A model generated the notes under the pieces. It ran no database searches. It was not told where the DNA came from and saw only the letters and a list, made by a program, of their open reading frames with translations. The position numbers were made by a program, and so were the translations under genes. A stretch of 64,000 nt of DNA from Asterias rubens (taxonomy: Eukaryota). The stretch is from contig NC_047072.1 in the NCBI RefSeq assembly GCF_902459465.1, positions 12,214,001 to 12,278,000 on the forward strand. The letters are read 5' to 3'. Shown here one piece after another: positions 5,774 to 45,152 of the stretch (position 1 is its first letter; each line of letters starts with the position of its first letter).

Positions 5774-7246
5774 CTAGGGCGATGTAATTTCGAGTATCGT
5801 GTTGTCGACTTCAACTACGCAATTACTGAGTTTCGACAAGCTGGTGTTTCTTGAATGGTCCGAAGGGGTCCTTCCCGCGCTTTCTTCGGCATTATTGTTA
5901 CTATTGTCCTGCAAACCACTCTGTATCGGCTGCTCGTACATCTCCAGCTCGGTGTCTTCAAACTGAATCGGGACTAAATTGTTCTCCCTCTTTGATGAAC
6001 GTTTCTTCTCCTTTTGTTCGAGTTTCTTCTCCCGTTTGAGCTGTTTTTGTAGTTGTTTTTCCCGCCGTTTTTGCCGGTAGGAATCGCTGACCAGACAACC
6101 GAGATGCGGTGCGGCGAGGAACAGAATCCCGATTAGAGCGAGGCCACCGAGTGCCGATAGGTCGACGGCGATGAGTAGGAGGGGGTTCCGGGCTAGGGAG
6201 TTATTATCCACGTCGTTGTTATCTTTTACCCGGACGGTAGGGCTTTTTAGTGTTACGGTTATGTTCCTTGAAGCATTTGCATTCCACACTCTGCACGTTA
6301 TTTCGGTCGAGAAGTCTTCGCTTCTTACCTCGGTGATGTTGAGATGTGATGAGAGCAAAATCCTGTTCGAGTCTCGCTCTTCTTCGATGGAGAAGCGAGA
6401 AGTCGTCGAGTTGGTTGAATTAGACATCGGGATGGGGAGGGATGTATTCCCATGAAACCAATGTATTCTTTGTATGGGTGGGTTGGCTGACGCAGAGCAT
6501 GTTAAAGTTATCAACTCACCGAGTTTGGATTTTGGGTGTGATGGCGAAATCATCACCGAGGGTGCGTATAGTACGGTGAGAGGTCCTACTGTGCATGATC
6601 TGTCGTAGCCATCTAGTGCCGGGTGTTCCTCGTGGCATGTGAACACGGCCCCATCATATGCCGGTGTGGCGTCCCATATCACGGTATGGTTAGGCCCAGG
6701 ACCGGCCAGACCCACTTGACCGTTCAAACCCTGCCATGTAAGCTGGGAGTTTGGTCTTCCTCCACTGGCGGTCATACAGGACGCCGAAATCTCATCCCCT
6801 TCAGATAGAGGCGTCCTGTAGCTCGCCGAGCATACGGGGTCTCCAGGAGGTGCCACTGGCGGCAAAATCTTAACCGTCCCTGGCTTTCCGTTGATGGTAT
6901 ACGTCCCATCAGACAACAGACATTCGTATAAACCTTCATCCGTCATCTTCAAGTCATGAATAGTGAGGTTAAAGTATCCACTTGTTAAGTCTTCTTCAAT
7001 TTTAAACTTCGGACGGTTCGTAACGTAGTCGGCAGAATCGAAGCTTAAGATCAGCAATTCGCCAGCTTCAATGTACCAGAAGACTCCGTAGTTTCCTCGG
7101 TCGGTTATTTGGCAAAACAGCCGCACTGTGCTTCCTTCCAACCCACCAGCCTCCGAGAACTGGTCAACAGTTTGAGCAACGGACACCGAGACTGCATGGA
7201 AGGCAACTAACAGGCAGACAACAACGATTGAGAAATCTGCCGCCAT
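5774..7246 (-). CDS. Ig-superfamily type I membrane protein 1 (signal peptide, V + C2-like + I/C2-like domains, TM, tail; nectin/CADM-like architecture), 490 aa, single coding exon
   Basis: AAAATGG start and hydrophobic leader. V-domain C...W...DEGLYEC; domain 2 CMTASGGRPNSQLTW...CHEEHPAL; domain 3 CSASANPP...W...C. TM LLLIAVDLSALGGLALIGILFLAA is followed by a basic tail. Confidence 0.92.
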   Translation of the reverse strand: MAADFSIVVVCLLVAFHAVSVSVAQTVDQFSEAGGLEGSTVRLFCQITDRGNYGVFWYIEAGELLILSFDSADYVTNRPKFKIEEDLTSGYFNLTIHDLKMTDEGLYECLLSDGTYTINGKPGTVKILPPVAPPGDPVCSASYRTPLSEGDEISASCMTASGGRPNSQLTWQGLNGQVGLAGPGPNHTVIWDATPAYDGAVFTCHEEHPALDGYDRSCTVGPLTVLYAPSVMISPSHPKSKLGELITLTCSASANPPIQRIHWFHGNTSLPIPMSNSTNSTTSRFSIEEERDSNRILLSSHLNITEVRSEDFSTEITCRVWNANASRNITVTLKSPTVRVKDNNDVDNNSLARNPLLLIAVDLSALGGLALIGILFLAAPHLGCLVSDSYRQKRREKQLQKQLKREKKLEQKEKKRSSKRENNLVPIQFEDTELEMYEQPIQSGLQDNSNNNAEESAGRTPSDHSRNTSLSKLSNCVVEVDNTILEITSP

Positions 7247-7874
7247 TTTGAAAAAACTTTGTTCTGATGCAACTGTTCAGTTTAGTTGTACTCAGTCTGC
7301 GTTATTAAAATAATTTTGTTCCAAGTATTTAGGTTAAAGTGTATGTAGTAAACTGGGTAGCAAGCGTGTATCACGTATGTAGGCAGACATTAGTGATCCC
7401 TTTTTGCACATCAAAGAGACACTTTTGTTCGAACAACCTTGACACTCGAACTCCATTTTTTGTTCGATTCAAGTAGTATAGACTCCACCCAGCGTACAGT
7501 ATAACAACAGCCCCGCGTCACAAAATCAACACTGCCCAAACTCGCACAGAAAGTGTTTTTGTTTTCAGTGCAAATAAGAGAAGAGAAAGAAACGGAAATT
7601 GTTTGAATAGTTTCACTTTATAAAAAGACAAAGGTTTTTAACAATGACGACGCTACAGGGAGGCAGGGCACATGCCCACGCCCAATGTGCTACACCTTGA
7701 AATATGGACCTTTGAGATTAAAAAAAATGAATAAAAGCTTTTATGAAGTAATACTTTTAAATGTTTAAAATGTTGGTTCGATTAAAATTGTGCATCCCCT
7801 TGTTCCCCTAAAAATAATTGATTTGTAGTCTAATGTTCCAGCCATGTAAACGACTGATACACATTACATGCGCA

Positions 7875-8242
7875 TTAAAGATGCTATGTCAAATTTTTGG
7901 CCGATTTGACCAAAAAATTTTCATTTAAAATTCAATAGGTATTTTGATGGGGGTCGAGAAAGTAACAAGCTTTCATTTGAGCCATTGCTCGAAAAAGTCC
8001 GCCAATTATTAGTAGCAGTGAAATAAAGTGCTCAAAATTAGTTTTTGTCGGGATCCCGACAATATATCACGTGACCAATTCTTATGAGAAACGTTTTAAA
8101 TTTGTGTCATGGTTCCTGACCATTAAAAGTAAAAGTTAAACTTTGTTTCGTTAGAGCGGGTGATACTCTTTGAAATACCATTCACTCAAAAAAACAATAT
8201 TTTTTAATATTTGGGGCAAAGAATCTGACATAACATCTTTAA
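7875..8242. mobile_element. Distinct TTAA-flanked MITE family (TIR AGATGYTATGTCA; Kolobok-like)
   Basis: TTAA-AGATGCTATGTCAAATT ... GAATCTGACATAACATCT-TTAA. Confidence 0.75.
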
Positions 8243-8440
8243 CAATTAATTGTATTGCACCCTGGCTCCACAGTGCCATACTTGGACCGTATACCGAATA
8301 GCGGCTACGAGCCACAGCTACGACTGTTGCTAAGGGTGTGACCAAAGACGTTACGTCATTGCATAATGAAGTGGCGATCAAGCTGTAGCCTGCGGACACG
8401 GCTTTATATGATTGCCAGAGGCAAATTGATGACGCCATGT

Positions 8441-8677
8441 ATTGACCCCTTGCACGCGCGTCACACGCGACGACTGGGCCCAATTTCATAGAGCTGCTAA
8501 GCAAAAGGCACCACCACATGACGTCATTTCAGTAGGGCGCCCTCACCTAGAGGTCAAAAGGAGGTTGTTCATTGGCCAATCCTGTGCGCCGCGCGTACAA
8601 ATCTGTGCTTTTCGATTGTTTCGTCACCGTTTTTCCACTAGGATGGCCGCTGGATGACGTCAATGCATAAGGTCTAT
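8441..8677. mobile_element. Chimeric AT-flanked MITE remnant with two TGACGTCA (CRE-like) motifs and a CCAAT box
   Basis: 8515-8677 is the reverse-complement homolog of 2786-3206. The left part matches the element start at 52070 and a family D TIR. Confidence 0.6.
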
Positions 8678-9662
8678 TGCTGTTACCAAGCATCCAAGTA
8701 CATGTAAGGTTTTATGTAGCCTTTAATCAAGGCGCATGCAGCAGCGGCACCCCCCCCCCCCAGATATCAAGCACCAACCGTTCATTCAGGTAAACCATGC
8801 GTGTAATCGCGCGATATCTCGGACACACGGGATTTTGTACCCTTTTACATCATTATTTTGTTTTCAACAACGCTAATAATATTACACCCGTGGTGTAATT
8901 GTTTTCACACAACACCCATGTTTTTGCCAATTAATCCAACCTATGTATTTGAAGTTACATGGGTGTTTGGTTTGGGCTCAACGGGCGTACCTGTTTGGGA
9001 CTAGACGCGTATAAGATTTGCTTCTTAGTGAGCTCCCCTGTAGTTCATCAAAGTGTATTTACTTCCGCTTGGCTTATCTTAGTCACGAGAGAATAGTGAA
9101 CAACCGATTACAAAGTTTGCAGTGCTTAATTTCAAGGGATGTTTTCAACTGTCGTCATCATTAGATCGTGTAAGCTTTATGTAAATCTGTGATCTTCACG
9201 ATTTTTGTTTCTTACAAGTTATGTAATGTTCCTTTAACTGTATTATTTGGAACATGTGCATATTTTGCCTGTATTGCATTCGTTACTGTGGAAACAATAA
9301 ACATTGAAACCTTGAATATCCATCACAATCCCGGGCTGTAAGCCAATCCTGATATTTTTCTCTGGCTCAGGAGAACAAAATGTGTTTCGGGTTTCAAAAC
9401 ACGTACACCGTGCCAATAAAGACCAGTTTTCAAATTGTTTGAGTTTTCTTTTTAAGAGGATTGCTATGCCCAAGGGGATGCACTATTCTTTCAAATGAAT
9501 AGTCTGGACTTCCCCCTATGCAAACCTCCCTATCCAAACCTCAGACCTGCTTTTCACACAGCAGAATCAACAACCAAACAAACAGTCTGTGCCCCCAAAA
9601 CAGGGTTTTTTAAAACTCTACTCATAGTTCTATCTATATAGCTAAACGGGGACACATTATTC

Positions 9663-10045
9663 TTAAAAGCCTAGGACACTATTGGTAATTACTTAAAATA
9701 TTTATTATCATAAAACGTTACATTGTAATGAGTAATGGGGAGATGTTGACAGTATAAAACATTGTGAGAAACGGCTCCCTCTGAAGTAACCTAGTTTTCG
9801 AGTAGAAAGAAGTAATTTTCTACGAATTTAATTTCGAGACCTCAGATTTAGAGTTTGAGGTCGCGAAATCAATCATCTGAAGCCACACAATTTCGTGCGA
9901 CAAGGGTGTTTTTTCTTTCATTATTATCTCGCAACTCTGACGACCAATTGAACTCAAATTTTCACAAGTTTGTTATTTATGCATATGTTGAGATACACCA
10001 AATGAGAAGACTAGTCTTTGACAATTACCAAAAGTGTTTGACACA
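9663..10045 (+). mobile_element. MITE family A copy with degenerate right end
   Basis: TTAA-AAGCCTAGGACACTATTGGTAATT start and family A body. A partial duplicate of the right end follows to about 10140. Confidence 0.8.
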
Positions 10046-10146
10046 TTTTTTACCGAATTTTTAGTTTATGCGTATGGTTGGATACACCAAGTGAGGATAC
10101 TGTTCTTTGACAATACCAAAAGGTGCCAAAACACTTCCTAACACGG

Positions 10147-10319
10147 CTGCCGTCGATTTCACAAAACTCTTCCTAACTTAAGACTAATCTTAGGACTTAG
10201 GACGAGTCCCAACACTGCAATGTAGCATGCAGACCTTAAGATTAATCCTAAGTTAGGACGAGTTACTCGTCCTAACTCGAGATAAGACGAGTCCTAACTC
10301 TTTGTGAAATCAACCCCAG
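10147..10319. mobile_element. Small CWG-flanked MITE with CCTAAC/GGACGAG modules (Harbinger-like)
   Basis: CTG-CCGTCGATTTCACAAA ... TTTGTGAAATCAACCC-CAG. Second diverged copy at about 60324-60476. Confidence 0.65.
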
Positions 10320-10809
10320 TGCCTTTAAGCGGGTCTATGAAATTTGGGCCAGCTTTCACTGCAGTCAACAAACCCAAAAGCCCAGTCTGTGCCAAAAACG
10401 GTATATTATTAATCAGTCTATTCAACTGTTTTGAACAGAAAGTCTCAAAAGTGTTACCCTTGACCTCTCATAATGCGCGTTTGAGTTTGGCAGTACCAAA
10501 CAATACCAGTGCCTTAGTCACACCTTTTGATTCAGATGACTGATTTTAGTAAAAAGGGTGTTCGATATGACTGTACGACTGGGAATTACACTGCTACAAC
10601 TCGCCTACTAAACAGACATACCACACTCACTTAATGTTTTGAAGGGAACCTTGTGTATTGGGCGTGTTTTTTTTAGAACTTATTGGAACTTATCGTGAAC
10701 TTGTTTGATTTTATTGGTGTCAGAGAACCCGTCAAGTTCATCAGTATTACAGAGCGTGAAGAGCACTGTGGGAGTAGGACATTTTGCAGTCGTGAGTTTT
10801 GAAACCAAC

Positions 10810-22997: not shown

Positions 22998-23048
22998 GAA
23001 ACAAACAAACAAACAAACAAACAAACAAACAAACAACAAACAAACAAA
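22998..23048. repeat. (AAAC)n microsatellite
   Basis: Direct tandem AAAC units. Confidence 0.9.
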
Positions 23049-26758: not shown

Positions 26759-27145
26759 TTAAAGGCAGTGGACATTATTGGTAATTACTCAAAATAATTA
26801 TTAGCATAAAACCTTTCTTGGTGACAAGTAATGGGGAGAGGTTGGTGGTATAAAACATTGTGAGAAACAGCTCCCTCTGAAGTGCCATAGTTTTGGAGAA
26901 AGAAGCAATTTTCCACGAATTTGATTTCGAGACCTCAAGTTTAGAACTTGAGGTCTCGAAATCAACCATCTAAACGCACACAACTTCGTGTGACAAGGGT
27001 TTTTTCTTCTTTCATTAGTATCTCGCAACTTTGATGACCGATTGAGCTCAAATTTTCACAGGTTTGTTATTTCATGCATATGTTGAGATACACCAACTGT
27101 GAAGGCTAGTCTTTGACAATTACCAATAGTGTCCACTGCCTTTAA
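26759..27145 (+). mobile_element. MITE family A copy (well preserved, 387 bp including both TTAA)
   Basis: TTAA-AGGCAGTGGACATTATTGGTAATT ... AATTACCAATAGTGTCCACTGCCT-TTAA. Confidence 0.92.
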
Positions 27146-29420: not shown

Positions 29421-29435
29421 TCGCTAGGTGGCGCT
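29421..29435 (+). promoter_or_regulatory. Candidate CTCF-type motif
   Basis: TCGCTAGGTGGCGCT matches the CTCF core consensus (CCRSYAGRKGGCRS) at all but the first position. Motif match only. Confidence 0.3.
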
Positions 29436-31585
29436 GTTTTGACTAACGCGTCTGAGCTCAGTGGCAAATTATTGAAGGCCTACACTCACGTTAGTATTAT
29501 TATTATTTATTTATTCAGCCCAGACTTCAACAAACAGTACAAGATACAATATTACCGCAAAATATAACAATATAAATGAAATATCCTCGGGAAAACATCT
29601 AGTTATCCACATGGCATGGCAACAAGTCTCACAAGCAAGTAGTTTCGCAACCAAAGTCATTCACGAATGAAGCTACTCACATGGCAAGAATTCAGGATTC
29701 TTTTCTAAACTAAAAGAACGACAACTATGAATTCCTCATACTATTGTTGTTTTGGCAAATTGACCCATCAGAAATGTCCAGTAAAAAGAACTATTCAAGA
29801 GTGAGGATTCTAAGAACATTTTAGAAAAGTCAAAAGCAGGGAAGTTAGTTGGTCAAGAATGGATTGTAAACGATGGTGGAAACCAGACAGATAGGGCTGC
29901 AGAAACACTCACACCCCAAGTGGTGTACCGGGGAAGGAGGAAGCCCTCCCCCGCCCCCTCCCATCCTTGCCCTCTTTCTATTAAAACACGTTCCCGTCGC
30001 TTAAGCTTGCTAGACCTTGCAACAAGTCGTAATGGTGTTTTATTCATGCTCATTGGCCTACTTCTGGGATATCCCACCATGAAGATGCATTATATTTGTT
30101 GTTTATAATATTTGTTATCTTGTCTATGTTTCATTCGTTGTACATAAAACCATTAAAACACAACTCAGCTTTTGGCTGCGATTTTTGAATGTTTGTGATC
30201 AACCAGTAACCAATTTATGGTAATTTGTTTTGAATGAAATCAGAACATCGAACAATGATTGGTCTGAACATGGTGGGGAAAATTAGAAGGAGTTACGTTG
30301 CCACCCCCCCCCCCCCCCAAATGTCTGGTTTTCCAGCGCCCTGCGTTACAAAACATCGTGGTGTCAAAAAATAAATGAATGGGAAATGAGAAATGAATCA
30401 CACCAGGAAAACAACACTGATTTATTATTTCGGGTACATGTACTTATAGTTGTGACTCTAATAACGGTAACCTTTCCCAATGCAAATATAATTTGACGCA
30501 GGTAAACATTTCGAGCACGACCAACACAAACACCTTTCTCTTATGAGAGGTCTATTCATAGCGACTGGTGGCTATTGATGTATTGATGACCACTTTTGTC
30601 CAGCCGTTCGGTTGATGTCACGAGCAGTGAAAAGATGGCGATATTGTACACATTTGCATGAGAAAAGACTAGCAGAGGTTCGAGCGAGAGATACACAAAC
30701 TGTTGCTTTATAAACACAATCTAATTTAAGGGTTTGGAGGGCGTTGTCTGTTTAAACATGGAGGAATAATAAAGTTGATCTCATTTTGAGAAATATTAAA
30801 TGCATGGGGTCATACAACATAAAGGGTGTCTTGTTTTGGGATGTGAATTTCTAGGAGTCGGTGGGAAAAACGGCAATTTTAGGGAATTCACCTTTTTCCC
30901 CCAAAATGGAGGTGGGTGTGTTGAAAGTGGTGCACTGCTAACAATAGAACGAGTGTGCTTTAGAGTTTGTATTCACATGCAGAGTGGGGGAGGAGGTGAC
31001 GGGGAGGTCGTCTATAATCCCCGGATGTATCATTTGAATGCATTGTCAATTGTGATTAGTCATTGCTTCAACGGAATTCCATTAACGTTTGCTTGGTTTG
31101 GCATTACAATGGATTCACAGCAGAATACTAGTGTAGAGTGTTAATATAGTACAGCTACACTGTGGTGTGAGTAATTTTATAAGAGAGCATCTATTCTGTA
31201 AAAAAAACCTGTATAGAGTTACTCGAGGAACATGGACGAAGAATCTGGAAGCAGAAACGATTTGTGATTGTGAAGGGGGAACCGACCAGCCCTGTAATGT
31301 GGTGGACCTAACTCTGTTGCTGGAACTCCTTCAACTGTCTCTCTGCAGCAACCACATGTATCGTAAGTTGAAGGACATCGTGTGTATACTGATAGGCCTA
31401 TAACGTGGTTACAAGTGACACTTGTGACCGTATGTACAATTTCGCTTAAGATAATATTGTGATAGTGAAACTGAATTTGCTGCATGGTCGGAGTCCGATA
31501 GCTCGGGTGATATTATGCTTGGGCCTGCCTCCATCATGGTGATAGAATTATGATACACTGTGAGGAGATTTCGACTAAAAAAAAA

Positions 31586-33343
31586 ATGGCTCCACGACTA
31601 AAGCTAACTGTGTTACTTCTACCATGGTTCGTTGTGATTATGTTAGTGTGTCGCACTCATCAACAGCAGGTTACGTTTGTAATTCAACCACAAGATATGA
31701 ACATTATCGAAGGATCCAAAGCCGTTTTCACGTGTGAGATAACCACCAATGAAGTAGAAGAAATAAAGTGGTACCGCTGGGACACAGCAACAGGGGGAGG
31801 CTCATCACAAGTAAAGGATGTCGGTCGTTTTGAAATATCTGAAACAACGGGGACAACAGCTCAAAGCCTGATTATCAGCGAAAGCATACTGAGCGATTCG
31901 GCGTATTACTTCTGCACCTACGGGAACCAGTCAAAGTCCACGCTGGGTAGATTGGAGGTCCTCCCAAAAACTTGGTTGCCGCAGTGTTCTCGGACACCAA
32001 GCACTGGGAAACTTCCCATCGGGGAACGTTTTGAGCTTGCATGTACCTCAACCGGCCATGTGGACACATCTCTCGTGTGGTACGTACGAGAGACCTCAGG
32101 CAGATCCGCTGTTGACAACGTCCAGGTAATTAAGGATCAGGAGTTAATGAATGTTACCTCAATCTACGGTAGCATGATAGGTACATCCGATGCTTTAGTG
32201 TATACTTGTGAGGCTTCTTTGGATGGTCTGTTCCAACAGGAGAGCTGTACCGTATCAATTAACGATGAGGCTCCGCTTGATATTATCCCTTATATTGTGG
32301 TGGGTCTGATGAGTCTCATTGCCTTACTGCTGTTCTTCGTGGTGCTGTGGATCCTGTTCAGACACAGACAGTGTCGCATCTGCCAACAGGCTATGCAAGA
32401 ACCTCACACGGTTCTGGACGCAGCATCTTTACAGACTGGTTCCTGGGTTCCTCCACCGGTAGTTGCCATTGACGTTGAAGGCAGTGAGGGCAGTGAGAGC
32501 AGTGAAGATCGTGTCTCGGAGAAAGATACCCAAATACACCATTTAGATAGAGGTACCAACCAACCTCCTGACGTGGTGCCTGTTTTGGAACCCGTTGAGG
32601 TACCCGAGATAGGTGATCAGCCTAGCAGTTCCTCTGAAGTGGTTCCTGAAACGGAACCTGCAGATTCATCGGAACCTGTTCCGAAAGCAGAACCAGGACC
32701 CACAACCGAACTCAAACCGAAAACCAAGAACCTCACCCTGACCAAAAACATAGACAAGAACATCGAGAAGCCTGAGAAAATTGTCGAGAAGAAGGAGATT
32801 CAATTTCCAGCACACAAGACACGCGGAACGCGCAGACCTAGGGACAAGAAGGTCAAACATTACAAGGAACCTCCAGTGAAGGCGAAAATGAAAGAAAAGG
32901 AACCGATCTACGCCCATGTTAAAAAGCTGAACGTGCCAACAAAGTCCACTCAGGGGGGTTCAACATCAGCAGATGCCGTACCGTCTACCTCAGCGGGGGC
33001 GACGGCAGTCCCCCCACCCGATCCACCACCCCGACCTTCCCCTGACTCGGAGTCGAAAGACACAAGCTCCACGACCACGAACTCGTCAGACCAGACCCCG
33101 GGCGTAAACGATCTAGGACGGGGGAACTCCAAGAAGAAACGAGTCAAACACTACCGAAAGAAGTCCGAGGACGTCAAACGGAACTCACATCCTGAAGAAA
33201 CTGTGTTGAATATACCGGCGGCGACCAACTCGACCTCTGAATCGCCATCAGCCCAGCCGAAGAGCTCACCCAAAGTGCCCGCAGACCGAGTCATCTATGC
33301 AGAGTTAGATTTCAGTAAAGATGTTGGACCCAATATTATATGA
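31586..33343 (+). CDS. Ig-superfamily type I membrane protein 4 (two Ig domains, TM, long Pro/Lys-rich tail with EPIYA and ITIM), 585 aa, single coding exon
   Basis: AAAATGG start and signal peptide (an upstream in-frame ATG at 31550 is possible). DSAYYFC domain 1; CTSTGHVDTSLVW...YTC domain 2; TM IIPYIVVGLMSLIALLLFFVVLWILF; tail ends VIYAELDF... Confidence 0.92.
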   Translation: MAPRLKLTVLLLPWFVVIMLVCRTHQQQVTFVIQPQDMNIIEGSKAVFTCEITTNEVEEIKWYRWDTATGGGSSQVKDVGRFEISETTGTTAQSLIISESILSDSAYYFCTYGNQSKSTLGRLEVLPKTWLPQCSRTPSTGKLPIGERFELACTSTGHVDTSLVWYVRETSGRSAVDNVQVIKDQELMNVTSIYGSMIGTSDALVYTCEASLDGLFQQESCTVSINDEAPLDIIPYIVVGLMSLIALLLFFVVLWILFRHRQCRICQQAMQEPHTVLDAASLQTGSWVPPPVVAIDVEGSEGSESSEDRVSEKDTQIHHLDRGTNQPPDVVPVLEPVEVPEIGDQPSSSSEVVPETEPADSSEPVPKAEPGPTTELKPKTKNLTLTKNIDKNIEKPEKIVEKKEIQFPAHKTRGTRRPRDKKVKHYKEPPVKAKMKEKEPIYAHVKKLNVPTKSTQGGSTSADAVPSTSAGATAVPPPDPPPRPSPDSESKDTSSTTTNSSDQTPGVNDLGRGNSKKKRVKHYRKKSEDVKRNSHPEETVLNIPAATNSTSESPSAQPKSSPKVPADRVIYAELDFSKDVGPNII

Positions 33344-33460
33344 ACTATTTTTTTTAGTTGAAGTTTTTGTATATACTCAATATACTTATATCAACAAATG
33401 TATGCAGGGACAAAATTTACCCAGGAAGTATTTTTTTAAATGTACATGTAGCAGCATGAC

Positions 33461-33658
33461 CAGGGCCCAACTTCAAGCCTGTAAGCAAAAAAAACCTGCT
33501 AAGCTTAGGAAAATCTTGCTTAGCACAAACAGGTTACCATCCAACATTCCATAAAGTTTACATTGTTGCGACTGGTGTCCCGACTCATTTTGTGCTTAGA
33601 AGAAAAATATGTCAAGTAGTATTTTCAGTGCTAAACAGCTTTATGAAATTGGGCCCCG
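33461..33658. mobile_element. MITE family D copy, about 120 bp after the Ig gene 4 stop
   Basis: CAG-GGCCCAACTTC ... GAAATTGGGCC. Confidence 0.65.
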
Positions 33659-33736
33659 AATGAGGAAGTTTCAATAGGATACCTTTGACTAACTCCTTTC
33701 AATCAACATCCTCTAGTTTTTTTATAAAGCATCCTG

Positions 33737-33930
33737 CACTCTAAAAACATCGGGGTCAGATTTGACCCAGATTTCGGGCCCCGTGTGGCCCTGACACATT
33801 TCTTAGTCAGTGTGACCCAGATTCTGAGTCAAAGTGACCCAAAAATGGGTCAAAAGGACACAGAATCCGAGTTAGAAATCCCATTTGTAACCACTTCCTA
33901 GGTCAACCTGACCCAGAAATGATTCAGACC
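33737..33930. mobile_element. EnSpm/CACTA-like fragment with repeated TGACCC motifs
   Basis: CACTCTAAAAA terminus followed by many TGACCC/GGGTCA motifs. Similar pieces near 22640-22830 and 23330-23440. Confidence 0.4.
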
Positions 33931-33952
33931 CACAACGACAAAAAATAATGTC

Positions 33953-34170
33953 TTAAAGGATTTGGGTACTTTTTGTTACACAAAACATTAAACATTTATG
34001 TATATTAAACTAATACCGTTTGAAGATAATGATGGTAGAAAGTTGACCTTAAAATACTACTTGCCAGGCTGCTGTAGTTTTTGAGAAATGAGTAAAACAA
34101 TGTCACGAAAACACATTTTACATGCTAAAATTATTTCCGTGGCTTGTTTTACTAATTTCTCAAAAAATAG
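33953..34170. mobile_element. MITE family C left-arm fragment
   Basis: TTAA-AGGATTTGGGTACTTTTTG; homologous to 2309-2480. Confidence 0.7.
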
Positions 34171-34353
34171 ACTTTAAATTAAAAGGAAATGTTTGCACAA
34201 TTTTATCGTCAGGTTTGAGGATTGTTATTGGTTTTCACATTCAAAAGGACTCTATAAGTAAATGAGTGGATCACAAAACTTTATATTGATGTAAAGGGGC
34301 TCACTATATGGTGACTTTCTTATTACGTTTTTGCATTGTTGTGAGACCAACCT

Positions 34354-34521
34354 ATAGACATTAATTTTATCACGGTTCAGCCATCTTGAACTTCTCCCAT
34401 TGATGTCAATGGAAGAAAAAATAGTCTGGTTCCTATATTTTCAAAATGATTATTATCATTCATTATTGTTAGTCGACACGAGGAACATAACCAAGATGGA
34501 GGCAGCATGAAAAAGGTCTAT
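34354..34521. mobile_element. AT-flanked MITE (same family as 12770)
   Basis: AT-AGAC ... AAAGGTCT-AT; shared AATAGTCTGGT and CATTCATTA core. Confidence 0.6.
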
Positions 34522-34602
34522 TCGAAGCTTATTGTTGTTTTGTATATTTTATCATAAAGTATATCAAGATGTTATTCAATGACATACATGTATAGTTACA
34601 AG

Positions 34603-34785
34603 CAGGGCCCAATTTCACAGAGCTACTTAAGCAAACAATGTTGCTTTATAATTGTGTGCTTAGCAGAAATGAGCAGGATACCAGTCACAATGTGTACACG
34701 AGACATGGTAATGTGGCTGGTAACCATAGTTTTGTTGTGCTTAGCTTCTTCTTGTGCTAAAGCAGCTCTATGAAATTGGGCCATT
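34603..34785. mobile_element. MITE family D copy
   Basis: CAG-GGCCCAATTTCACAGAGCT ... AGCTCTATGAAATTGGGCC. Confidence 0.7.
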
Positions 34786-34811
34786 GTTACTAGAGAGAGG
34801 TTACACCACCT

Positions 34812-34987
34812 CAGGCCTGTATGCTTCGTTTTTGAAAAGACAAGGGCACCAAGGCATTTTCTCTTTGGCAAAGGGCACCCTATGAGAAAACTGTAAATTT
34901 CTACTGGAGAATTTCAAGGGCACCAAGGCAACGACCAGGAGACATGGAGGCAATCGCCTTCGTTGCCTCCGTGAAGTATCAGGCCTG
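34812..34987. mobile_element. Small CAGGCCTG-terminated element with a 6-bp flanking direct repeat (hAT-like)
   Basis: CCACCT-CAGGCCTGTATGCTTCG ... CGTGAAGTATCAGGCCTG-CCACCT; internal AAGGGCACCAAGGCA repeats. Confidence 0.6.
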
Positions 34988-34994
34988 CCACCTA

Positions 34995-36028
34995 AATTCT
35001 CCAAAAATCAATTACCATAAAAACTGACTTGGCAAAAAGCATTGGAGAGCCATTCCTATTACAACACATTGTTAAAGCAACGACACCCTCTGAAGTTGTG
35101 ATGTAGTTTTTAGAGGGGTAATTCCCCCTCCCCCCCAAAAAATAAAAAAATAAATAAATAAATAATAATGATAATAATTTAAATCTGAAGAAGGCTTCAG
35201 CCATGAAGCCTTCCTCAGTTATCTGAAAACACACAATTCTATGCAATGAGGGTGGTATCTCTTTCTTTACTTTTGCAACTTCGGTATTACCGTTTGAGCC
35301 CAACCGCTCACAGGTTGGTTATTTGTTATGTTGGACACACCAACTGATTAGGGTACTGGTCTTTGACAGAATACCAAAAGTGTCCTGCCTTTAAATTGAA
35401 GAAGTTGTTTTTATTTAAAATACTGTGTAATGACTTAAAGGCACTGGACACTCAAAAAGAATTAGTATACAAACTTTTTAATGTTTGCGATAGAGGTAAT
35501 TTCTCACTCAAATAACAAAAGACTTCAGCTGAAGACTGTTATTATGCATGTACGCAAAACGATGCAACAAGGTTGTTTTTTCTTTCATTATTCTCTTGCA
35601 AATTCGATGACCAATTGAGCCCAAATTTGGAAAAACACTAAGTAGAATACTGGTCCTTGACAATAACAAAACGTGCCCAGTGCCTTTAATGACGTACGCA
35701 ATCTTGGACGAAATGTGATATGATGCTTATGAACAAGCTGCATTAAAGGCAGTGGACACTATTGGTAATCACTCAAAATAATTATTAGCATAAAACCTTT
35801 CTTGATTACAAGTAATGGGGAGAGGTTGATAGTATACAACATTGAGAGAAACAGCTCCCTCTGAAGTGACGTAGTTTTCGAGAAAGAAGTAATTTCCACG
35901 AATTTGATTTCAAAACCTCAGATTTAGAGTTTGAGGTCTCAAAATCAAGCATCTGAAAGATACTGTTGAGATACACAAAGTGAGAAGACTGGTCTTTGAC
36001 AATTACCAATAGTGTCCATTGTCTTTTA
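34995..36028 (+). mobile_element. Three adjacent degenerate family A MITEs (about 34995-35394, 35435-35689, 35743-36028)
   Basis: TTAA-AGGCA(C/G)TGGACAC and GCCT-TTAA ends with family A internal blocks. Confidence 0.7.
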
Positions 36029-37151: not shown

Positions 37152-38246
37152 CATTTATACTCTCGGTCGATTTGGTTGGTAAGTTGTTTGCAACAGCTAA
37201 TTCTATTTTCTCAAAAATGAAATTATAACTTTAAACAGGGCCTAAATGTGATGTGTAATTTGTTAAGGGTAGGATTGCAGACCTTTTAATCCCTGAACAT
37301 AGCCGACTAAAATGAAAAATCTGGACAAGAAGCATTGCGTGGTGATCAACATTCGATCGGGACGGTCGGTATCTGGTTTCATGCATATTCAGTAAAAACA
37401 TCGCGGGTAAAAAAACATTACTATCCGGCGTTTCTCAAATTTAAGTGTAGTACAAGAACACCATTGAATGCCAGAGCGACCAAGAACGACGTGAGATATA
37501 TTTTATCCTGGACAACGGGTTTCAAATGCTTAATATGTTATTGTTGCAAGTTTACACAATTACAAGAGAGTTGTCATAAGATCATTGCATAAGATGTGTT
37601 CAAAATCTTTCACCTCGCACCTCGCGTTATCGAATATCCCAGATAAAAGAGTTATTTTGGCAGGGGAAAAAAATGCGAATGGCAAAGGAAGAAAAGAAAA
37701 TACTTCCACCGGAAATAAAAACCAAAAACTACACACGCATTTGCGACTTTTCTCCCTCGGCTCTTTTTTCCTTTCCCCGCCTCCCCTCCCCCTTCCCTCT
37801 TTCTCCCCCATTTTTTCCTTTTTCTTTTGGGTGACCCTCTTGGGGGGGGGGGGGGGGGGGGCTCAAGCCCCCCGAGGCCCCCCCCCCCCCTTGGGTGCGC
37901 CGTTGATTATTCTACAAGCAGCCTTGATTGTTGAATTCCTACAATTTGTCAGTTGTGCGATACAAATTCTGGTTTTACATTAACGGACTCATAACTGGAA
38001 CAAAACTGTCTATTATTCTAATTGACAGTTATTATGAACATAATCTCAATTTGAATATAGGCCTACAACGTTAAATATCCAATTACCACCATGTGAAACA
38101 GTCAAAGTAATTATCATAATTGTAATTAAATGGCATTTCATTAGTTGTTGTGAATGGCAAAAACTACATTAAAGGGAATGTTTACGTCTGGTAATCACTC
38201 TTAAAATTAATGGGAACAAAACCCTTTGTTTAAAATCCTACAACGT

Positions 38247-38602
38247 TTAAAGGCAGTGGACACTATTGGTAATTACTCAAAATAATTGTTAGCATAAAAG
38301 CTACTTTTGTTACAAGTAATGGAGAGCTATTGATAGTATAAAACATTGCGAGAAACGGCTCCCTCTGAAGTAACGTAGTTTTCGAGAAAGAGGAAATTTT
38401 CCACGGATTTGATTTCGAGACCTCAGATTTAGAATTTGAGGTCTCGAAATCAAGCATCTGAAAGCACACGACCTTGTGTAACATGGATTTCTTTTCTTTT
38501 ATTATTATCTGACAACTTTGAAGAGTGATTGAGCTCAAATGTTTGCAGGTTTGTTATTTTATACATATGTTGAGATCCACCAAGTGAGAAGACTGGTCTT
38601 TA
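38247..38602 (+). mobile_element. MITE family A copy, right end truncated
   Basis: TTAA-AGGCAGTGGACACTATTGGTAATT start and full body. Confidence 0.85.
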
Positions 38603-38890
38603 ATAGTATAAAGCATTTTGAGAAACAATTTCACTTCAAAGTTATGTGGTTATGTACAAAGAAAACAGTTATTATGCCACAAGATTTGAAGCTGAGAAGC
38701 AGTATAACAGTATTTCTTTTAGGGGGCTGTACTCTTCTTCTGCGTCGACATAATATTCGCTCCGGATTTTCTGCGATATCTCAAAAACGAGACCACCATT
38801 TGAAATAACAATTTCGGATATAAGTTATATTGTGCACATCTAGGATTAAAACAATCAAACAGTTCTAAAAACAAAAAATATACTTTGCCT

Positions 38891-39624: not shown

Positions 39625-42600
39625 GAGAGCACCCAAATCAATCAATGTCTGAACGGATTATTGTGTTGGACAGGTGTTAGATCGTCTCCATGGCAACAGG
39701 ACAGTAGATGGACCTTCATAAGTGATTTGATTAAAATATTATGTTTCAAGTCTTTATATAGGGATTATGATTAATGGTGCTGGTTTGATTAATTCACGTT
39801 TTGGGGAAGTCAAACGTAACTGTTTTTGTGTTGATCAAACAAGTAATGTCACGAAGACAGACCCACACTTGGTTTACTGACAGAATATTTTGTATTAATT
39901 TAAAGGGGAAGTAATACATTTTGTTCGACCGTTTGATTGTTTTAATCCCATTACACACTAAAACAACATTTGAAACATTTTCTAGATATCGCCGAAAATT
40001 TAACAATCATTTGTTATTGTTACACAATATCTGAGATACGTTACTGTCGGTATCGCTTCTCATATTCACATTTTTAGGGGGGAACTGGTTTATATTTCCG
40101 ATCACAATACTGAGTGAAACGTTTCTCAAAAATTACTCATACATTCGAAAGATGATGTATTATCTAACCAATTCATTTTGTATCGCCAATAATTTTGAGA
40201 TTACCAAACGCACTTATTCCCTTTAAATTGTGTTAGTATTTTATTATTCAATTTTATTTTGTCACCCCCACCATGGTGTGTACAATCTTGAAGTTGGAAC
40301 TGTCGGCAGTATGTTGACAAAGGAATTGCCAACATATGGAAGGGTTGTTCATGTACTTTGTTTATTCTGGGCCCTTTTTGTCAGGCAAAAATACTGCACT
40401 GGTCATGTTGTAGGAAATTTAACATTAGGTATAAGAAATTCCACATAAAAAGTAACGAATTATCAAAAGTAACGGCTGAACAAAGTCTTTGAGATGTGCT
40501 AGTTTTCCTGACGTCAAAAGTTGGCACAAAAGAGACGATACTTTCTCCATAAAATATTACCTGATGGAAGTCTTGCTCTGTGGCTCCTTTTGTAAATATT
40601 TATGACATACACAACATAAACCAAAGTGAGACCCAATTGTCACATTTTATAGATTCCTTAAAAAAAAAGATAAACATAAGCCCTTCACCATAGGGTGTAA
40701 ACATAGAACTATTTTTTCCCTGCCAACATAGTTACATTGGTTTTGTTTTAACACAAAACCACGTTAACTTTGATTTCGTAGACATCTATAATGTTTGACA
40801 ACACCCATTGTGGTATCAATTTTAACACCCCAGTTGTTGCCAATTTACCGCGCCACCCCCGGACTCACCACTAAACCAGAAACATAGGACAAAGTGTCCA
40901 TTATGCAAAATAACTGTATAGAGTATATGCAACAATTGGTATTTTTGATACTGGTAAATTGTATTGAATACTCCAAGCTATAGCCCAAAGCTATAGACTA
41001 TAAAACTAGAACCCATACACGTATAGTTTGTGTTCATAAACTGTCATCATAACTTGAAGCAGCAAACAAAGCAGTTATAAGAACAACAGTTCAGTTTTTT
41101 TTTTTTTAGCAAAACAAAAATTCAGTACAAAGATGAATGGTGGAGCCTATAAACATAGTGTCTGTCACTCGTATGGTTTTACATGTCTAGCAACTGAATA
41201 GTGGTTTAGCGTTCAGCCGTGACCTCCATTTTGCAAACAGCCAAGCCCAAATCCCACCGCCTTGGTTGTCGTTTCCAAAGCCAAAATCAAACCAATTATT
41301 ATTCAAATGAGCTCTTTAAAAAAAAAACGACTAAAAAGTAGGAGGTTATAAGTTTGCCATATTTGGTAGCATACGAAATACACCTTTTGTTGCGTCGTGA
41401 ATAATGTCACGTCCCATGAAGTACAATTGCCCGGTCGACCGAGAAAGAAGCAGACCCACTCCACTTTGTCTATTTTATGAAAATATTTGTAGCCATTGTG
41501 CCCTGACATAGCCTATGCCAGAGTAGGTCGAACCCGATTGAAATAGGAATCTGAGTAATATATTTTCTTTTGGAGGTAAAAACGAAAACAAGTTTTGCGC
41601 AATGTTGGTTAAAGCTACCTGTCCCAATTTGGTGTTTGAAGTTTGTACAACTTTGTTCATGGTCAAAGCGGTATAGATGTTAAATTATCCAAGTGAATTT
41701 CAATTGTACCATTTGACGTGAATTTATACCCAAAAACTTTAAATAATGGCACCACTTTTTAGAACTTGTAAAACCACCATTGACGTCGGCCTATTCCCAT
41801 TAAAAACTCCCATTTATAAATAAAGTAACCAAACAACCGATTTCGTGATTTACCTAAATTTTCAAAACTTTTTTCGAAATATTTGTTTTATAGAAAAGAC
41901 GAAGTATAAGGTATTCTGTAAAGAGCTAACAACATATATGTCGCAAACAGTGTTCATGTTTTGTGTGCTCAAATTACATGCAATATCATTTTGGTTTTCA
42001 TTTGTTGTGTTAGTCAGGAGAAATAAGTGAAAACCCTAACATATTATTTTCTGAATGTAAACACATTGTCCTTAATACTTCGGTTGTTACAACCGAAATC
42101 TGCTGTTGTGTTTTGCAGGTCTTCAGCAACAGTTTTTTTTTTTTAAGTATGACTTCATTTTAATTGGGAAATATTTCACAGACAAAATGCTTTCATTATC
42201 AACTTTCTACTCAGTAAGTTTCAGACTAAAATTAAACAATTCATCCTCACCAATGTGGTGAAATGGCTTTTACGTAACTTTATTTTAATGAAACTTTTCG
42301 GCACGGGTGTTGCCCCAGTACAGTGTCTATACCTAAAAAAAAGACCATTGGCTGATGTTTTTGTCTGGTCTCGGAGATGAACCAAAATATATTCAGTTTT
42401 GTTTTTCTTTTAATACAAATATTTCAGGAGACATTTTCCTGTTTGGTTGCTTGAATGGCATCTTAAAACAAATTACTGTTCTTTTTTGGAGCTTGGACAA
42501 AATTTGAGACATGTAACTTATCCGTTGTTATCTTTTTGAAGAGAGTGGACGATAATAAATGAATTATCGAATGCTGTTGAATTGTTTTCAGTTGCAGTGT

Positions 42601-43508
42601 ATACATATTATTTGTTTAATAGTGCGATTTGATGTAACTTGAAATTTTATAACAACTTTATTATTACTTGTACACTGTATTCATTACTTTCAGGAGTATA
42701 CGGTGCTTAACATACATCGTATTGTATGGGTAAAATCACATAAAGTTCTTCACACCGATGCAAATTTAGGATCTTTTATTGTTGTTTGACCCTGTGAATG
42801 AATAAGTGAAATGTTATCAGGTGCCACTTGTTGCATTTTTTATTCCTAAAAATTACACATTAAGAAACCATATAAACTGAAATGTTTTGAATGATTTTAT
42901 CTTTAACTGTTAGCAAAAACACACCCGAGGATATTTTCGTGACGTATACCATAAATATTCACGACTTCTTTGTGTCCCCAAATGCAAATAGAAAGTCTTT
43001 TTGATATCGGGGCTGAACTGGAGGACACTCGACCAGTCCTTGTATATCCTAATGAATTATTCATAAGATCTTTGTGTTCTCATTCCTGTATACACCTGGA
43101 TAATGGCTGACTGGCTACGCACTAAGCCGTCCGCACTGAACCCATTGTGAAAGTGATGACTAGTGAAAGACAGTCTGGCCTCGTCCTCAAGGTGACGTCA
43201 TCGTGTAACCGCCTCTGACTGTATCATGCATAGTAGTGTATTGGTACCGCCTCGTCAAACGCTAAACCTACAGGTGGACGTCGTAAAAGCAGTATTGTTC
43301 TGCGAGGAGGAAATCAAGAAAGTGAAAAATATATATACACTTCTCAAGATGACCATATCTTCATCCATGACAGATGATACACGCTGAAACATCAAAAAAG
43401 TGAGTTTTAAATGCAGCATACTCTGATCGATAAACTGATATCAGGAGTCAATTGTGGTGTGTGTGTATGTAACTGTTGCTGGAGTGGTATACGGTTTTGA
43501 CAATGAAA

Positions 43509-45152
43509 ATGGCTTCTCGCTGGCTTTACGTTGCTGTATTGATCACAACTCTTGGCAGTTTACCGTTAATTACAGCACAGTTGTTTATGGTTGAACCGAG
43601 GGATGCTGAAATTATGCTCAACGACAGCGTGACAATGCGGTGTACGATAACATACCAACCTGATGCCACTGTGTTCTGGTCCACCCCCGGTGCTTCGACT
43701 CTCATCGGGGCTACCACTCCTCTAGAAAACCTCGAGGGTCGATTCTCCATAATTAACGGCCAGAGCGGGGAGAATAACCTGGTGATAAATAAAGTTCTTC
43801 CGCGGGATAGCGGTCCTTATGTCTGTATCGTCATTATAGCCAACGGTTTCGAAACAACTCGGTTCGAATCTGAAACTGGAACCTTAAGGGTTGTTCAAGT
43901 GCCCGAGAGTGGGGATACAGTGTGCTGGACGGAACAAGGGAGAATGGCTAGTGTTGGGGACCCCATATCCCTCAAATGTGCCTCGAGCGACCCCACTGTG
44001 AGCTTGACGTGGTTTGTTGGGGACGTGGATCTGAGTTCTTCTCCCGTGAGTATTTCCCCAAGAGGGACAGGGATCGAGACTGAATTCCTCGCCCAGTCCC
44101 AGACCAATTTGAAGACGTACACATGCCAGCCGAATAGTGGAGACTACACCCCATGTTCTGTGACTCTAGAGGTGCAGCATCCACCAGTTGTGCTCATTGA
44201 GGAAGAAGGAGTTATCGAGACCGGACTTGATGCCAGATTCAAGTGCATGGCTACGGGAAACCCGGATAACTTTGCCTTTATTTGGCACTACAACGGCTAC
44301 CAGGTTGGGTTCGAAGAACATTCTAGGTTCAACAGGGCTAGACTTGAATCCAGCGGCTCTGTTCTGGTGCTACCGGGTTTGGAAGATGCTGATAATAATG
44401 TGACGCTACAGTGCGAAGCTGTTAATGCTCTGGGTTCTGAGAAAGCGACGCATGTGATAAACGCACGGGCCGGTAAGACTCTGGCGCAGGTCATCGGTCC
44501 GATCATCTTGGGCATCATCCTCGGACTTGTGCTCATCGTCTTGTTCCTGTACTTCCTCTGGTGGCGAAGACAGCGTATCAAAGTCGAGGAAATCACCAAG
44601 AAGAACAAGAGTGTGAAGAGGAGCGACTCCCGACGCACAGAGGTGCCTTCGGTTGACACGGGCATCGTCTACACACAGACCGTGGGTGGATTCGGCAGTC
44701 GGTACGGGAAGAAAAACGCGTCCAACGGCGACCTGGCACGCTCGGGACTCGATCTGGAGTCTGTCGGCTACGGGCCGGATGTCACCAATATCCCTGCCTA
44801 TAGGGCAACGGCTGAAGAGGAGAAAGAAGACGACGGGGCACTGAGGCCGATTCCAAGAAAGAAGAGCACTTCATCTCTGTCATCAATGGCGGCAACTAAC
44901 CATCCATCGTCATCAACAACTGCAGACGATGCTAGTCTCATCAGCCCAAAGGACGAGTCGTCGGCTTTCACCTACCATGTCAATCCACATTTCGAGGACT
45001 ATCGCTTCCCTCCAATCGAGAGCCAATCCGAAAATGATTTTGGTTCGGACGAGAAGAAGGAAAAACTGCAAAATCGCAATATCGAACCCGAAACCCCCGA
45101 CACAAACTTCCATAGCGGTGATGATGATAATATTATTAGCACTGAGTTGTAA
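43509..45152 (+). CDS. Ig-superfamily type I membrane protein 5 (three Ig domains, TM, tail ending in class I PDZ ligand STEL), about 547 aa, single coding exon
   Basis: AAAATGG start (alternative ATG at 43503) and signal peptide. DSGPYVC; CASSDPTVSLTW...YTC; CMATGNP...W...LQC; TM VIGPIILGIILGLVLIVLFLYFLWW followed by RRQR. Confidence 0.92.
   Translation: MASRWLYVAVLITTLGSLPLITAQLFMVEPRDAEIMLNDSVTMRCTITYQPDATVFWSTPGASTLIGATTPLENLEGRFSIINGQSGENNLVINKVLPRDSGPYVCIVIIANGFETTRFESETGTLRVVQVPESGDTVCWTEQGRMASVGDPISLKCASSDPTVSLTWFVGDVDLSSSPVSISPRGTGIETEFLAQSQTNLKTYTCQPNSGDYTPCSVTLEVQHPPVVLIEEEGVIETGLDARFKCMATGNPDNFAFIWHYNGYQVGFEEHSRFNRARLESSGSVLVLPGLEDADNNVTLQCEAVNALGSEKATHVINARAGKTLAQVIGPIILGIILGLVLIVLFLYFLWWRRQRIKVEEITKKNKSVKRSDSRRTEVPSVDTGIVYTQTVGGFGSRYGKKNASNGDLARSGLDLESVGYGPDVTNIPAYRATAEEEKEDDGALRPIPRKKSTSSLSSMAATNHPSSSTTADDASLISPKDESSAFTYHVNPHFEDYRFPPIESQSENDFGSDEKKEKLQNRNIEPETPDTNFHSGDDDNIISTEL

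Follow-up and report, generated by a model that had tools for sequence, protein, structure and literature searches.

What are the five related receptor genes that stand in a row in the genome of the sea star Asterias rubens: immune receptors, allorecognition genes, or adhesion molecules? The genes, A to E, lie within a stretch of 64,000 nt of contig NC_047072.1, which is the whole DNA that we analyzed and is called the window here; it contains no N, and positions are in its numbering unless another locus is named. A sequence-only reading of the window, made by a model, had described a cluster of single-exon immunoglobulin (Ig) superfamily receptors with divergent signaling tails and had proposed an undescribed recognition locus (immune, allorecognition, or neural adhesion) of an invertebrate deuterostome. 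Its observation is confirmed, and its interpretation is partly supported. A cluster of uncharacterized Ig receptors with distinct tails is real and conserved, and it is probably an old tandem array of five intronless type I surface receptors that belong to an ambulacrarian Kirrel-like group and serve adhesion or recognition.

Five long unbroken open reading frames (ORFs) lie where the sequence-only reading had placed them (Table 1), and each encodes an Ig superfamily receptor. The starts in the ORF list use bacterial start codons, and the real ATGs were set by match to annotated orthologs. Each protein has a hydrophobic N-terminal signal, a two-Cys V-type domain 1, a four-Cys domain 2, one strong transmembrane segment, and a tail of 95 to 330 amino acids (aa). 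A two-Cys domain 3 is present in A, B, C, and E and is gone in D, where the transmembrane segment begins about a dozen residues after domain 2. Pfam gave significant Ig_3, V-set, I-set, and ig matches in all five proteins and CD80-like C2-set_2 matches in most, and the domain layout that had been proposed is borne out by the ORFs and by Pfam.

The ectodomains are, as had been noticed, homologous yet strongly diverged: B and C are 47% identical, and every other pair is 22 to 30% identical. Domain 1 carries the signature C...W...D.G.Y.C in all five. An alignment of 14 family sequences has twelve invariant columns, eight of which make up the Cys/Trp framework of the first two domains together with an extra Cys pair (invariant pattern C, W, D.G.Y.C, P..C, C, W, C, C). 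One residue of the extra pair, which belongs to domain 2, lies on the A strand just after the P-x-C linker, and the other lies 10 to 14 residues past the F-strand Cys. AlphaFold models were confident, with predicted local distance difference test values of 84.5 for the ectodomain of A, which forms three Ig sandwiches, and 83.4 for that of D. In these models, the extra Cys residues map to the predicted first and last strands of domain 2, neighbors in the Ig sandwich, and a disulfide between them is plausible. A to E are long-separated and probably functionally distinct paralogs, not variants of one receptor.

The spacers between the coding regions, in the order A-B-C-D-E, measure 3.5, 7.3, 10.5, and 10.2 kb. 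That no other genes lie between the members, as had been claimed, agrees with three results: tblastn with all family members against the window gave no family-like match beyond ORFs A to E, ten sampled flank and spacer ORFs (83 to 132 aa) had no Pfam match, and the annotation of Asterias amurensis calls no gene between cluster members. Rfam at the gathering threshold found no family, hammerhead included, in the whole window.

The coding regions of the five genes are free of introns, and in this sense the description as single-exon genes holds. For every ortholog called (in A. amurensis, Patiria, Acanthaster, and one further assembly), the gene span equals three times the number of residues plus three. 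For gene D, contigs of four sequencing runs are unbroken on the window from starts at 31155-31240 to ~33570. Several of them begin at ~31155-31240, and the first reported joint lies at 33504 at the least, beyond the stop codon. Two of these runs are RNA by the tool's guess, and the kind of the other two was not assigned. Depth is absent from most of 29697-31075, upstream of D. This pattern is a better fit to transcripts than to genomic DNA, with a transcript start ~400 nt upstream of the ATG.

How old is this arrangement? The closest proteins are those of A. amurensis, with identities of 96% for A, 93% for B, 96% for C, 84% overall for D, and 97% for E. Chromosome CP134965.1 of A. amurensis has MutS, A(-), B(+), C(+), D(+), E(+) in succession, at a spacing similar to that in the window, and the public record of gene E has an A. 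amurensis cluster mate. A single scaffold of Patiria miniata (Valvatida) has F(-), A(-), a decayed partial A copy, B1(+), B2(+), D(+), E(+), and SH3BGR. Both A. amurensis and Patiria keep the gene order and orientations of the window, and Patiria adds a sixth gene, F. In Acanthaster, A and F occur together with a B/C model, and one contig of a further assembly has the B and C orthologs next to each other. The orthologs of gene A in Patiria and Acanthaster are 45 to 47% identical to it. A maximum-likelihood tree of the ectodomains supports each orthogroup (A, B/C, D, E, and F) at 99 to 100%. Judged by the tails, Patiria B1 is the counterpart of B, with which it shares a PVDL end, and Patiria B2 is that of C, with a shared SQSNPS...DFE end.

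Each of A to E has a one-to-one ortholog, and the cluster is older than the split between Forcipulatida and Valvatida, which we estimate at more than 200 million years ago. Apart from F, which lies outside this window, gene content has been fixed since the starfish orders separated. The synteny that had been proposed as a check, with MSH2 and a G protein-coupled receptor (GPCR) around the Ig cluster, stands for the cluster itself, the order of which is kept in A. amurensis and Patiria, but not for the right flank, which differs between the orders: E is followed by the GPCR in the window and by SH3BGR in Patiria.

Two gene models from other sea stars touch on members of the cluster. Between A and B1 of Patiria (L002:2047-3442) lies a recent partial duplicate of gene A, which is 94% identical to Patiria A over its first 248 residues and then has ten in-frame stops; annotated as a 465-aa gene, it looks like a pseudogene. 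A 1007-aa model of Acanthaster planci (P0043, L004:2095-7758) is matched twice by the family profile and appears to be a gene-predictor fusion of the neighboring B and C orthologs.

Clustered Ig superfamily transmembrane genes with ITIM-like motifs (ITIM, immunoreceptor tyrosine-based inhibitory motif) in a marine invertebrate bring to mind a highly polymorphic self/nonself locus, like Hydractinia Alr or the genes of the Botryllus fuhc region. The Alr genes are likewise unusual Ig superfamily genes, and sea stars reject allografts (PMC9763293). Against this reading stand strict one-to-one orthology, fixed gene number and order, and the results on selection and polymorphism. By the Nei-Gojobori method against A. 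amurensis, the ratio of nonsynonymous to synonymous divergence (dN/dS) is 0.19 for A, 0.28 for B, 0.19 for C, and 0.14 for E. These four genes are under purifying selection, domain 1 included. The fast-evolving exception is D, at 0.87 overall, with 1.44 for domain 1, 0.96 for domain 2, 0.15 for the transmembrane segment, and 0.65 for the tail.

Polymorphism was measured for B and D from sequencing runs, where the share of reference words found shows the presence of the reference haplotype. For the D coding region, this share was 0.98 to 1.00 of sampled 31-mers in eight runs (six labeled as the window's species and two labeled organism C), and the contigs of four of these runs showed one single coding difference. 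For B, it was 0.89 to 0.98 of words in 11 of 12 conspecific-type runs and 0.62 in the remaining one. In these figures, contigs drop rare variants and some runs may stem from the sequenced individual. Many deeply divergent alleles at B or D would not give the observed picture, and neither gene is hyperpolymorphic. With orthology that is one-to-one, four of its five genes under purifying selection, and B and D free of hyperpolymorphism, the cluster does not behave as an allorecognition locus. That explanation is largely refuted for B and D, and we regard it as very improbable for the locus. The sequence-only reading had itself set low polymorphism and one-to-one orthology to characterized adhesion genes against its proposal: polymorphism is low at B and D, but the orthologs are uncharacterized starfish genes and not characterized adhesion genes.

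The two runs labeled organism C (X13 and X15) contained 0.98 to 0.99 of the D words and 0.89 to 0.91 of the B words, with zero D coding differences in X13. The label may be wrong, the sample may be mixed, or the runs may come from a species very close to the window's.

The ectodomain of D is ~76% identical to that of A. amurensis, with 58.5 nonsynonymous and 15.5 synonymous changes. The remaining four ectodomains, taken as one pool, have 62.5 and 78.5 (Fisher p = 1.5e-6 for the difference in this ratio). With D's own small synonymous sample, omega for the ectodomain is 1.14 (bootstrap 0.68 to 2.2), which is not significant. The dN of the D ectodomain, 0.141 to 0.150, is higher than the pooled five-gene dS of 0.089 +/- 0.007 (z 2.5 to 2.7, one-sided p 0.003 to 0.006, with codons near indels kept or dropped) and also higher than alignable intergenic divergence (0.05 to 0.095). 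Substitutions are equal on predicted strands and loops, with no enrichment in either. Identity to Patiria is 34% for the D ectodomain versus 47 to 50% for the others; it is 80% for the D transmembrane segment and 51% for the D tail.

Relaxed constraint or pseudogenization of D was considered and is less likely, because dN exceeds the neutral estimates and because the framework of D is intact: the ORF, the Cys/Trp framework, the transmembrane segment, and the tail motifs are preserved in four species.

D is thus fast between two close species and varies little within its species, which fits directional selection from a changing ligand. D alone has both a constrained tail and an ectodomain that outpaces neutral change, as would be expected of a receptor with a co-evolving ligand. 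This ligand may be immune, reproductive, or developmental.

The five tails fall into four types. A different motif set on each tail, as had been claimed, is what we see in general but not in B and C, which have one type in common: a membrane-proximal S-C-x-L-C-V-D-R-S, an IPIE(D/E)FQGG box, and ...RYQNVNE(A/V)F, all conserved in Patiria. Y-x-N is the classic Grb2 SH2 consensus. The tail of A has a polybasic juxtamembrane stretch, a conserved LSNCVVE-DNTI box, and a variable end, with no PDZ ending. That of E is the best conserved of the five (62% to Patiria, with 84% for the transmembrane segment) and ends in ...NIISTEL in both genera. In the tail of D, a K-H-Y box occurs twice, as KEPIYAHVKKLNVP and ADRVIYAELDFSK; A. 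amurensis, Patiria, and a third species (P0014) all conserve it. Its EPIYA and VIYAELDF motifs are kept in Patiria, and the D tail motifs are also found in the third species. D thereby carries a conserved motif of the ITIM type.

The analogy with paired immune receptors that had been drawn from this layout does not survive. No tail has an ITAM (immunoreceptor tyrosine-based activation motif), none of A to E has a basic transmembrane residue, and there is no short-tailed member. Ectodomain divergence together with the lack of an activating member shows that this is not a paired-receptor system.

A charged transmembrane segment that could pair with an activating partner was considered for A, which has an Asp there; this residue is not conserved in Patiria, and the idea was dropped for that reason.

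Ettensohn and Dey 2017 is reportedly a source on the echinoderm KirrelL family, with which we compared A to E. KirrelL is an Ig-domain transmembrane protein needed for skeletogenic cell fusion, and kirrelL is without introns in every echinoderm examined (Khor and Ettensohn 2022, PMC8903837). Pm-kirrelL is expressed in the adult skeletogenic centers of Patiria (PMC8903837). In sea urchin work, IgTM affects skeletal branching, and the sea urchin Kirrel2L paralog Kirrel2L_4 has been reported in a blastocoelar-type mesenchyme cluster (PMC12189403). Sequences of KirrelL, Kirrel2L, Hypp1164, and IgTM from eight echinoderms are given in Figure 6-source data 3 of PMC8903837. By eye, KirrelL, Kirrel2L, and IgTM show GE(F/Y)NL...Y.C at the end of domain 1, a YP.C linker, L.C.S.GG.P..L.W, and F.C...........C.V, with the fourth Cys ~13 residues after the F-strand Cys; this is the same signature as in the A to F family. 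Hypp1164 has a looser signature, also by eye, and retains the extra Cys pair. Published tails of the family contain PIYAKP-K, LVYADLDL, LYATLD, and a C-terminal xYA.I(K/R), which parallel EPIYAHVKK and VIYAELDF of D and VVYAQIM of F. A to E also share with kirrelL an intron-free coding region and with the family the succession of signal peptide, V domain, four-Cys C2 domain, third Ig domain (not in D), transmembrane segment, and tail.

The five genes and their Patiria and Acanthaster orthologs are not among the sequences published in PMC8903837, from which their N termini differ. Six signature peptides of A to F are absent from all supplements of that paper, and a literature search with the Patiria and Acanthaster LOC identifiers gave nothing on these genes. 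The word "undescribed" in the sequence-only reading is therefore right for the five genes but not for their family, which PMC8903837 had already described. As regards skeletogenic expression under Alx1/Ets1 control, a trait of the KirrelL family, the window has 8 palindromic Alx1-type sites versus 3.2 expected, only one of them near a promoter region, and this count is not informative either way.

Word-based protein searches returned starfish proteins only. Beyond the starfish, we used a deep profile search of 1.8 billion representatives, with 150 matches listed. Single-unit echinoderm relatives would fall below these 150, and their absence there carries no meaning. Per-domain rescoring of the listed matches gave tiers, with starfish first, then hemichordates, and then arthropod KIRREL and nephrin. 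The hemichordate proteins, from Saccoglossus, Ptychodera, and Glandiceps, have extra V-like domains before domains 1 to 3 and the transmembrane segment, or long arrays of domains 2 and 3. They score 155 to 167 bits over domains 1 to 3, the highest non-starfish values per domain block among the matches listed. In the profile alignment, the extra Cys pair of domain 2 is present in the hemichordate proteins and lacking in the arthropod Kirrel and nephrin proteins examined. The two Saccoglossus genes examined are spliced, with one exon for each of the three N-terminal V-like domains in XP_006821751, and three Saccoglossus genes lie within ~90 kb on one scaffold. Three "hemicentin-like" records from Saccoglossus and Glandiceps (P0019, P0017, P0031) contain 7 to 17 tandem units of domains 2 and 3, at 84 to 139 bits each against the starfish profile, which is unusual for this module; an assembly or annotation artifact is possible for these arrays, and one of the records is a 6.7-kb contig.

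Alternatively, the five genes could be direct orthologs of bilaterian nectin/CADM, Kirrel proper, or DIP/IgLON that have lost their introns and serve mainly neural or epithelial adhesion. The names that NCBI gives to the orthologs include "cell adhesion molecule 2-like" and "synaptogenesis protein syg-1-like." The adhesion layout of V-C2-C2 plus PDZ, to which the sequence-only reading had also pointed, is a fair comparison, and E has a PDZ ligand, as do nectin, CADM, and Kirrel. Our profile matches arachnid KIRREL over its whole length at 138 bits and domains 1 and 2 of Rst at 99 bits. The best solved folds for the D model are domains 1 and 2 of Rst, Neph1, and SYG-1 (TM-scores of 0.51 to 0.59), ahead of antibodies and T cell receptors. 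The A model matches the three-Ig ectodomains of DIP, IgLON, CADM4, CADM2, and nectin, with CADM2/4 and IgLONs as its best Swiss-Prot folds, and it also matches the nectin-1/3 and PVR ectodomains across all three domains. Look-alikes from a structure atlas, which are leads only, were Kirrel, hemicentin, and nectin for E and JAM and basigin for D. However, searches of solved structures with single proteins and with the profile gave generic Ig superfamily matches and no decisive family, and identity to solved or reviewed members is 15 to 23%, with no family ahead. The extra Cys pair that arthropod Kirrel and nephrin lack is present in the hemichordate and the published echinoderm proteins, Kirrel proper has five Ig domains, and the tail motifs of CADM and nectin are absent. 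We consider direct orthology with any of these families quite unlikely.

On the reading that we prefer, an ambulacrarian Kirrel-like cluster for adhesion or recognition, each protein would sit in the plasma membrane, with domain 1 binding a partner on a neighboring cell by analogy with Kirrel, SYG-1, and nectin-type proteins, and each receptor would link such contact with a separate pathway in the cytoplasm. B and C may do so through a phosphotyrosine Y-x-N motif of the Grb2 type and a putatively palmitoylatable CxxC beside the membrane. E could act through its C-terminal S-T-E-L as a ligand for PDZ scaffolds, and A through its polybasic juxtamembrane stretch and conserved C-terminal box. The EPIYA- and ITIM-type tyrosines of D would serve as docking sites for SH2 proteins, SHP2 or Csk for example.

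Several points weigh against this picture. Membership of A to E in the KirrelL family is proposed from a motif-level comparison made by eye. The 150 matches listed in the deep profile search were dominated by giant multi-Ig proteins, and by sequence and fold searches the family closest to the three-domain members could be any of Kirrel, nectin/CADM, DIP/IgLON, and Robo. The short tail motifs may be coincidental, though their conservation argues otherwise. Finally, we infer the binding mode, tail partners, and tissue of A to E.

It is also possible that the cluster, or at least D, consists of inhibitory-type innate immune receptors of coelomocytes. The ITIM of D would then recruit an SHP-type phosphatase and damp activation upon meeting a self or pathogen-derived ligand, and pathogen or ligand pressure would drive its fast ectodomain. 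The conserved VIYAEL and EPIYA motifs of D speak for this, as do its ectodomain dN above both the pooled dS and intergenic divergence, its marked departure from the other four ectodomains, and the reported presence of sea urchin Kirrel2L_4 in blastocoelar-type mesenchyme. Yet the xYAxLD motif, which is of the ITIM type by its sequence, is family-wide and occurs in KirrelL, a cell fusion protein, too; it is therefore not diagnostic of immune function and not by itself a pointer to immunity. There is no activating partner, ITAM, or basic transmembrane residue, and across starfish D has one copy with one-to-one orthologs and shows no expansion. The test with the local dS, taken alone, also leaves relaxed constraint possible. 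We judge an immune role of this kind unlikely. Similarly doubtful is a more specific proposal for D as an inhibitory recognition receptor, with a tail kept for more than 200 million years and an ectodomain positively selected by a co-evolving ligand (pathogen, gamete, or cell-surface partner). Were it true, an invertebrate deuterostome would have evolved a receptor akin to an immune checkpoint out of the KirrelL-type adhesion family, and would have done so separately from the vertebrate ITIM receptors.

The neighbors of the cluster agree with the flanks that had been named, with the 3' end of a MutS-family gene on the left and a 7tm_1 ORF on the right (Table 1). The A. amurensis stretch that matches the left flank holds the end of a 931-aa gene with MutS_I-V domains. 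An interspersed repeat of ~400 bp is present in at least 8 copies in the window, on both strands; their identity to a copy from the A. amurensis locus (L001:4805-5200) is 79 to 87%, and the repeat is probably a SINE- or MITE-like element (short interspersed nuclear element; miniature inverted-repeat transposable element) of Asterias genomes. Just 3' of gene D, 33440-35015 holds very high-copy repeats with many internal joints, where summed contig depth rises up to 10^4-10^5, versus ~16-390 over the D coding region.

Table 1. Features of the Asterias rubens window, in window numbering
Feature	Position	Strand	Basis or remark
ORF A as listed	5774-7246	-	ORF list
ORF B as listed	10705-12255	+	ORF list
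ORF C as listed	19564-21072	+	ORF list
ORF D as listed	31550-33343	+	ORF list
ORF E as listed	43476-45152	+	ORF list
Gene A, 490 aa	5774..7246, ATG 7246	-	ORF, ortholog start; Pfam Ig_3/V-set/C2-set_2
A signal peptide	7175-7246	-	
A V-type domain 1	6863-7174	-	
A four-Cys domain 2	6563-6862	-	
A domain 3	6212-6562	-	
A transmembrane segment	6113-6190	-	
A tail	5777-6112	-	
Gene B, 481 aa	10810..12255, ATG 10810	+	A. amurensis ortholog with equal length and start
B domain 1	10891-11244	+	
B four-Cys domain 2	11245-11583	+	
B domain 3	11584-11883	+	
B transmembrane segment	11887-11961	+	
B tail	11962-12252	+	
B tail CxxC		+	after transmembrane segment
B tail YQNV	12163-12174	+	
Gene C, 490 aa	19600..21072, ATG 19600	+	ORF, Pfam, ortholog start
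C domain 1	19681-20019	+	
C domain 2	20020-20355	+	
C domain 3	20356-20634	+	
C transmembrane segment	20638-20712	+	
C tail	20713-21069	+	
C tail YQNV	20965-20976	+	
Gene D, 585 aa	31586..33343, ATG 31586	+	ORF, Pfam, ortholog start
D domain 1	31667-31963	+	
D four-Cys domain 2	31964-32281	+	
D transmembrane segment	32288-32362	+	
D tail, 326 aa		+	
D tail EPIYA	32900-32914	+	
D tail PPxRP stretch		+	
D tail VIYAEL	33290-33307	+	ITIM-type
Gene E, 549 aa	43503..45152, ATG 43503	+	ORF, Pfam; identical protein in public collection
E domain 1	43584-43904	+	
E four-Cys domain 2	43905-44192	+	
E domain 3	44193-44483	+	
E transmembrane segment	44496-44570	+	
E tail	44571-45149	+	
E C-terminal S-T-E-L	45138-45149	+	class I PDZ-type ligand
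MutS-family (MSH2-like) gene, 3' end	253..1506	+	left flank; 91% alignment to A. amurensis locus
Intronless rhodopsin-family GPCR ORF, 397 aa	58920-60113	+	right flank; Pfam 7tm_1 E 9e-40
~400-bp repeat copies	3874-4269, 14899-15291, 15324-15710, 16480-16878, 21470-21809, 26759-27145, 38246-38601, 51027-51413		

Taken together, these results probably add five conserved, uncharacterized members (six in valvatids) to the small echinoderm KirrelL-type family. This family, discussed so far only for skeleton-forming cells, may be larger than thought, with more varied tails. The spliced and clustered four-Cys genes of hemichordates bear on the published view that the KirrelL family arose by retrotransposition in early echinoderms. 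D is a concrete candidate for an ITIM-type receptor with a fast ectodomain that would have a recognition role in an echinoderm. The immune or allorecognition reading of the locus as a whole was tempting and is unsupported, and it is now removed.

How does the cluster compare with known systems? With the vertebrate KIR/LILR, SIRP, and NITR receptors, it has in common a cluster of Ig transmembrane genes, one ITIM-type tail (D), and a fast ectodomain (also D). Unlike these paired receptors, it has no near-identical ectodomains with swapped tails (its closest pair, B and C, carries the same tail), and its copy number is fixed. Hydractinia Alr and Botryllus differ from it in the polymorphism of B and D, which is low, and in gene content, which is fixed across species. 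The nectin/CADM/PVR proteins are alike in their V-C2-C2-transmembrane-tail layout and in length. CADM tails have a 4.1/FERM box and a class II PDZ end (EYFI), and nectins have an (E/A)xYV afadin-binding end; these are absent from all five tails. Identity to nectin/CADM is ~20%, no better than to DIP/IgLON, and the starfish genes differ in being intronless and in the extra Cys pattern of domain 2.

Kirrel/Neph, Roughest/Kirre, and SYG-1, adhesion proteins of the IRM type whose partners are nephrin, SNS, Hibris, and SYG-2, are alike in a CD80-like C2 domain 2 with GG.P..L.W, and Kirrel proteins have a class I PDZ-type end, as on E. The starfish proteins stand apart from Kirrel/Neph/SYG-1 proper in the number of Ig domains (three or two, versus five in Kirrel and eight to nine plus FN3 in nephrin), in an extra Cys pair that arthropod Kirrel lacks, and in an identity of ~15 to 20%. 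Hemichordate hemicentin/titin/obscurin-like proteins (Saccoglossus XP_006821751, Ptychodera XP_070551410) share the four-Cys domain 2, the transmembrane segment, and the tail, and differ in having three to seven extra V-like domains or tandem arrays of domains 2 and 3. Nothing in the published echinoderm KirrelL family corresponds to the tails of A, B/C, and E, and D has lost the domain 3 that published members possess. The likenesses to that family are those of an echinoderm type I Ig transmembrane protein with a V-type domain 1 bearing GE(F/Y)NL...D.G.Y.C, a P-x-C linker, a third Ig domain, one transmembrane segment, a long tail, and, in kirrelL, an intronless gene. The PIYA-x-x-K and (V/L)(I/V)YA(E/D)LD motifs of D recur in Kirrel2L, IgTM, and Hypp1164, with LYATLD in KirrelL itself.

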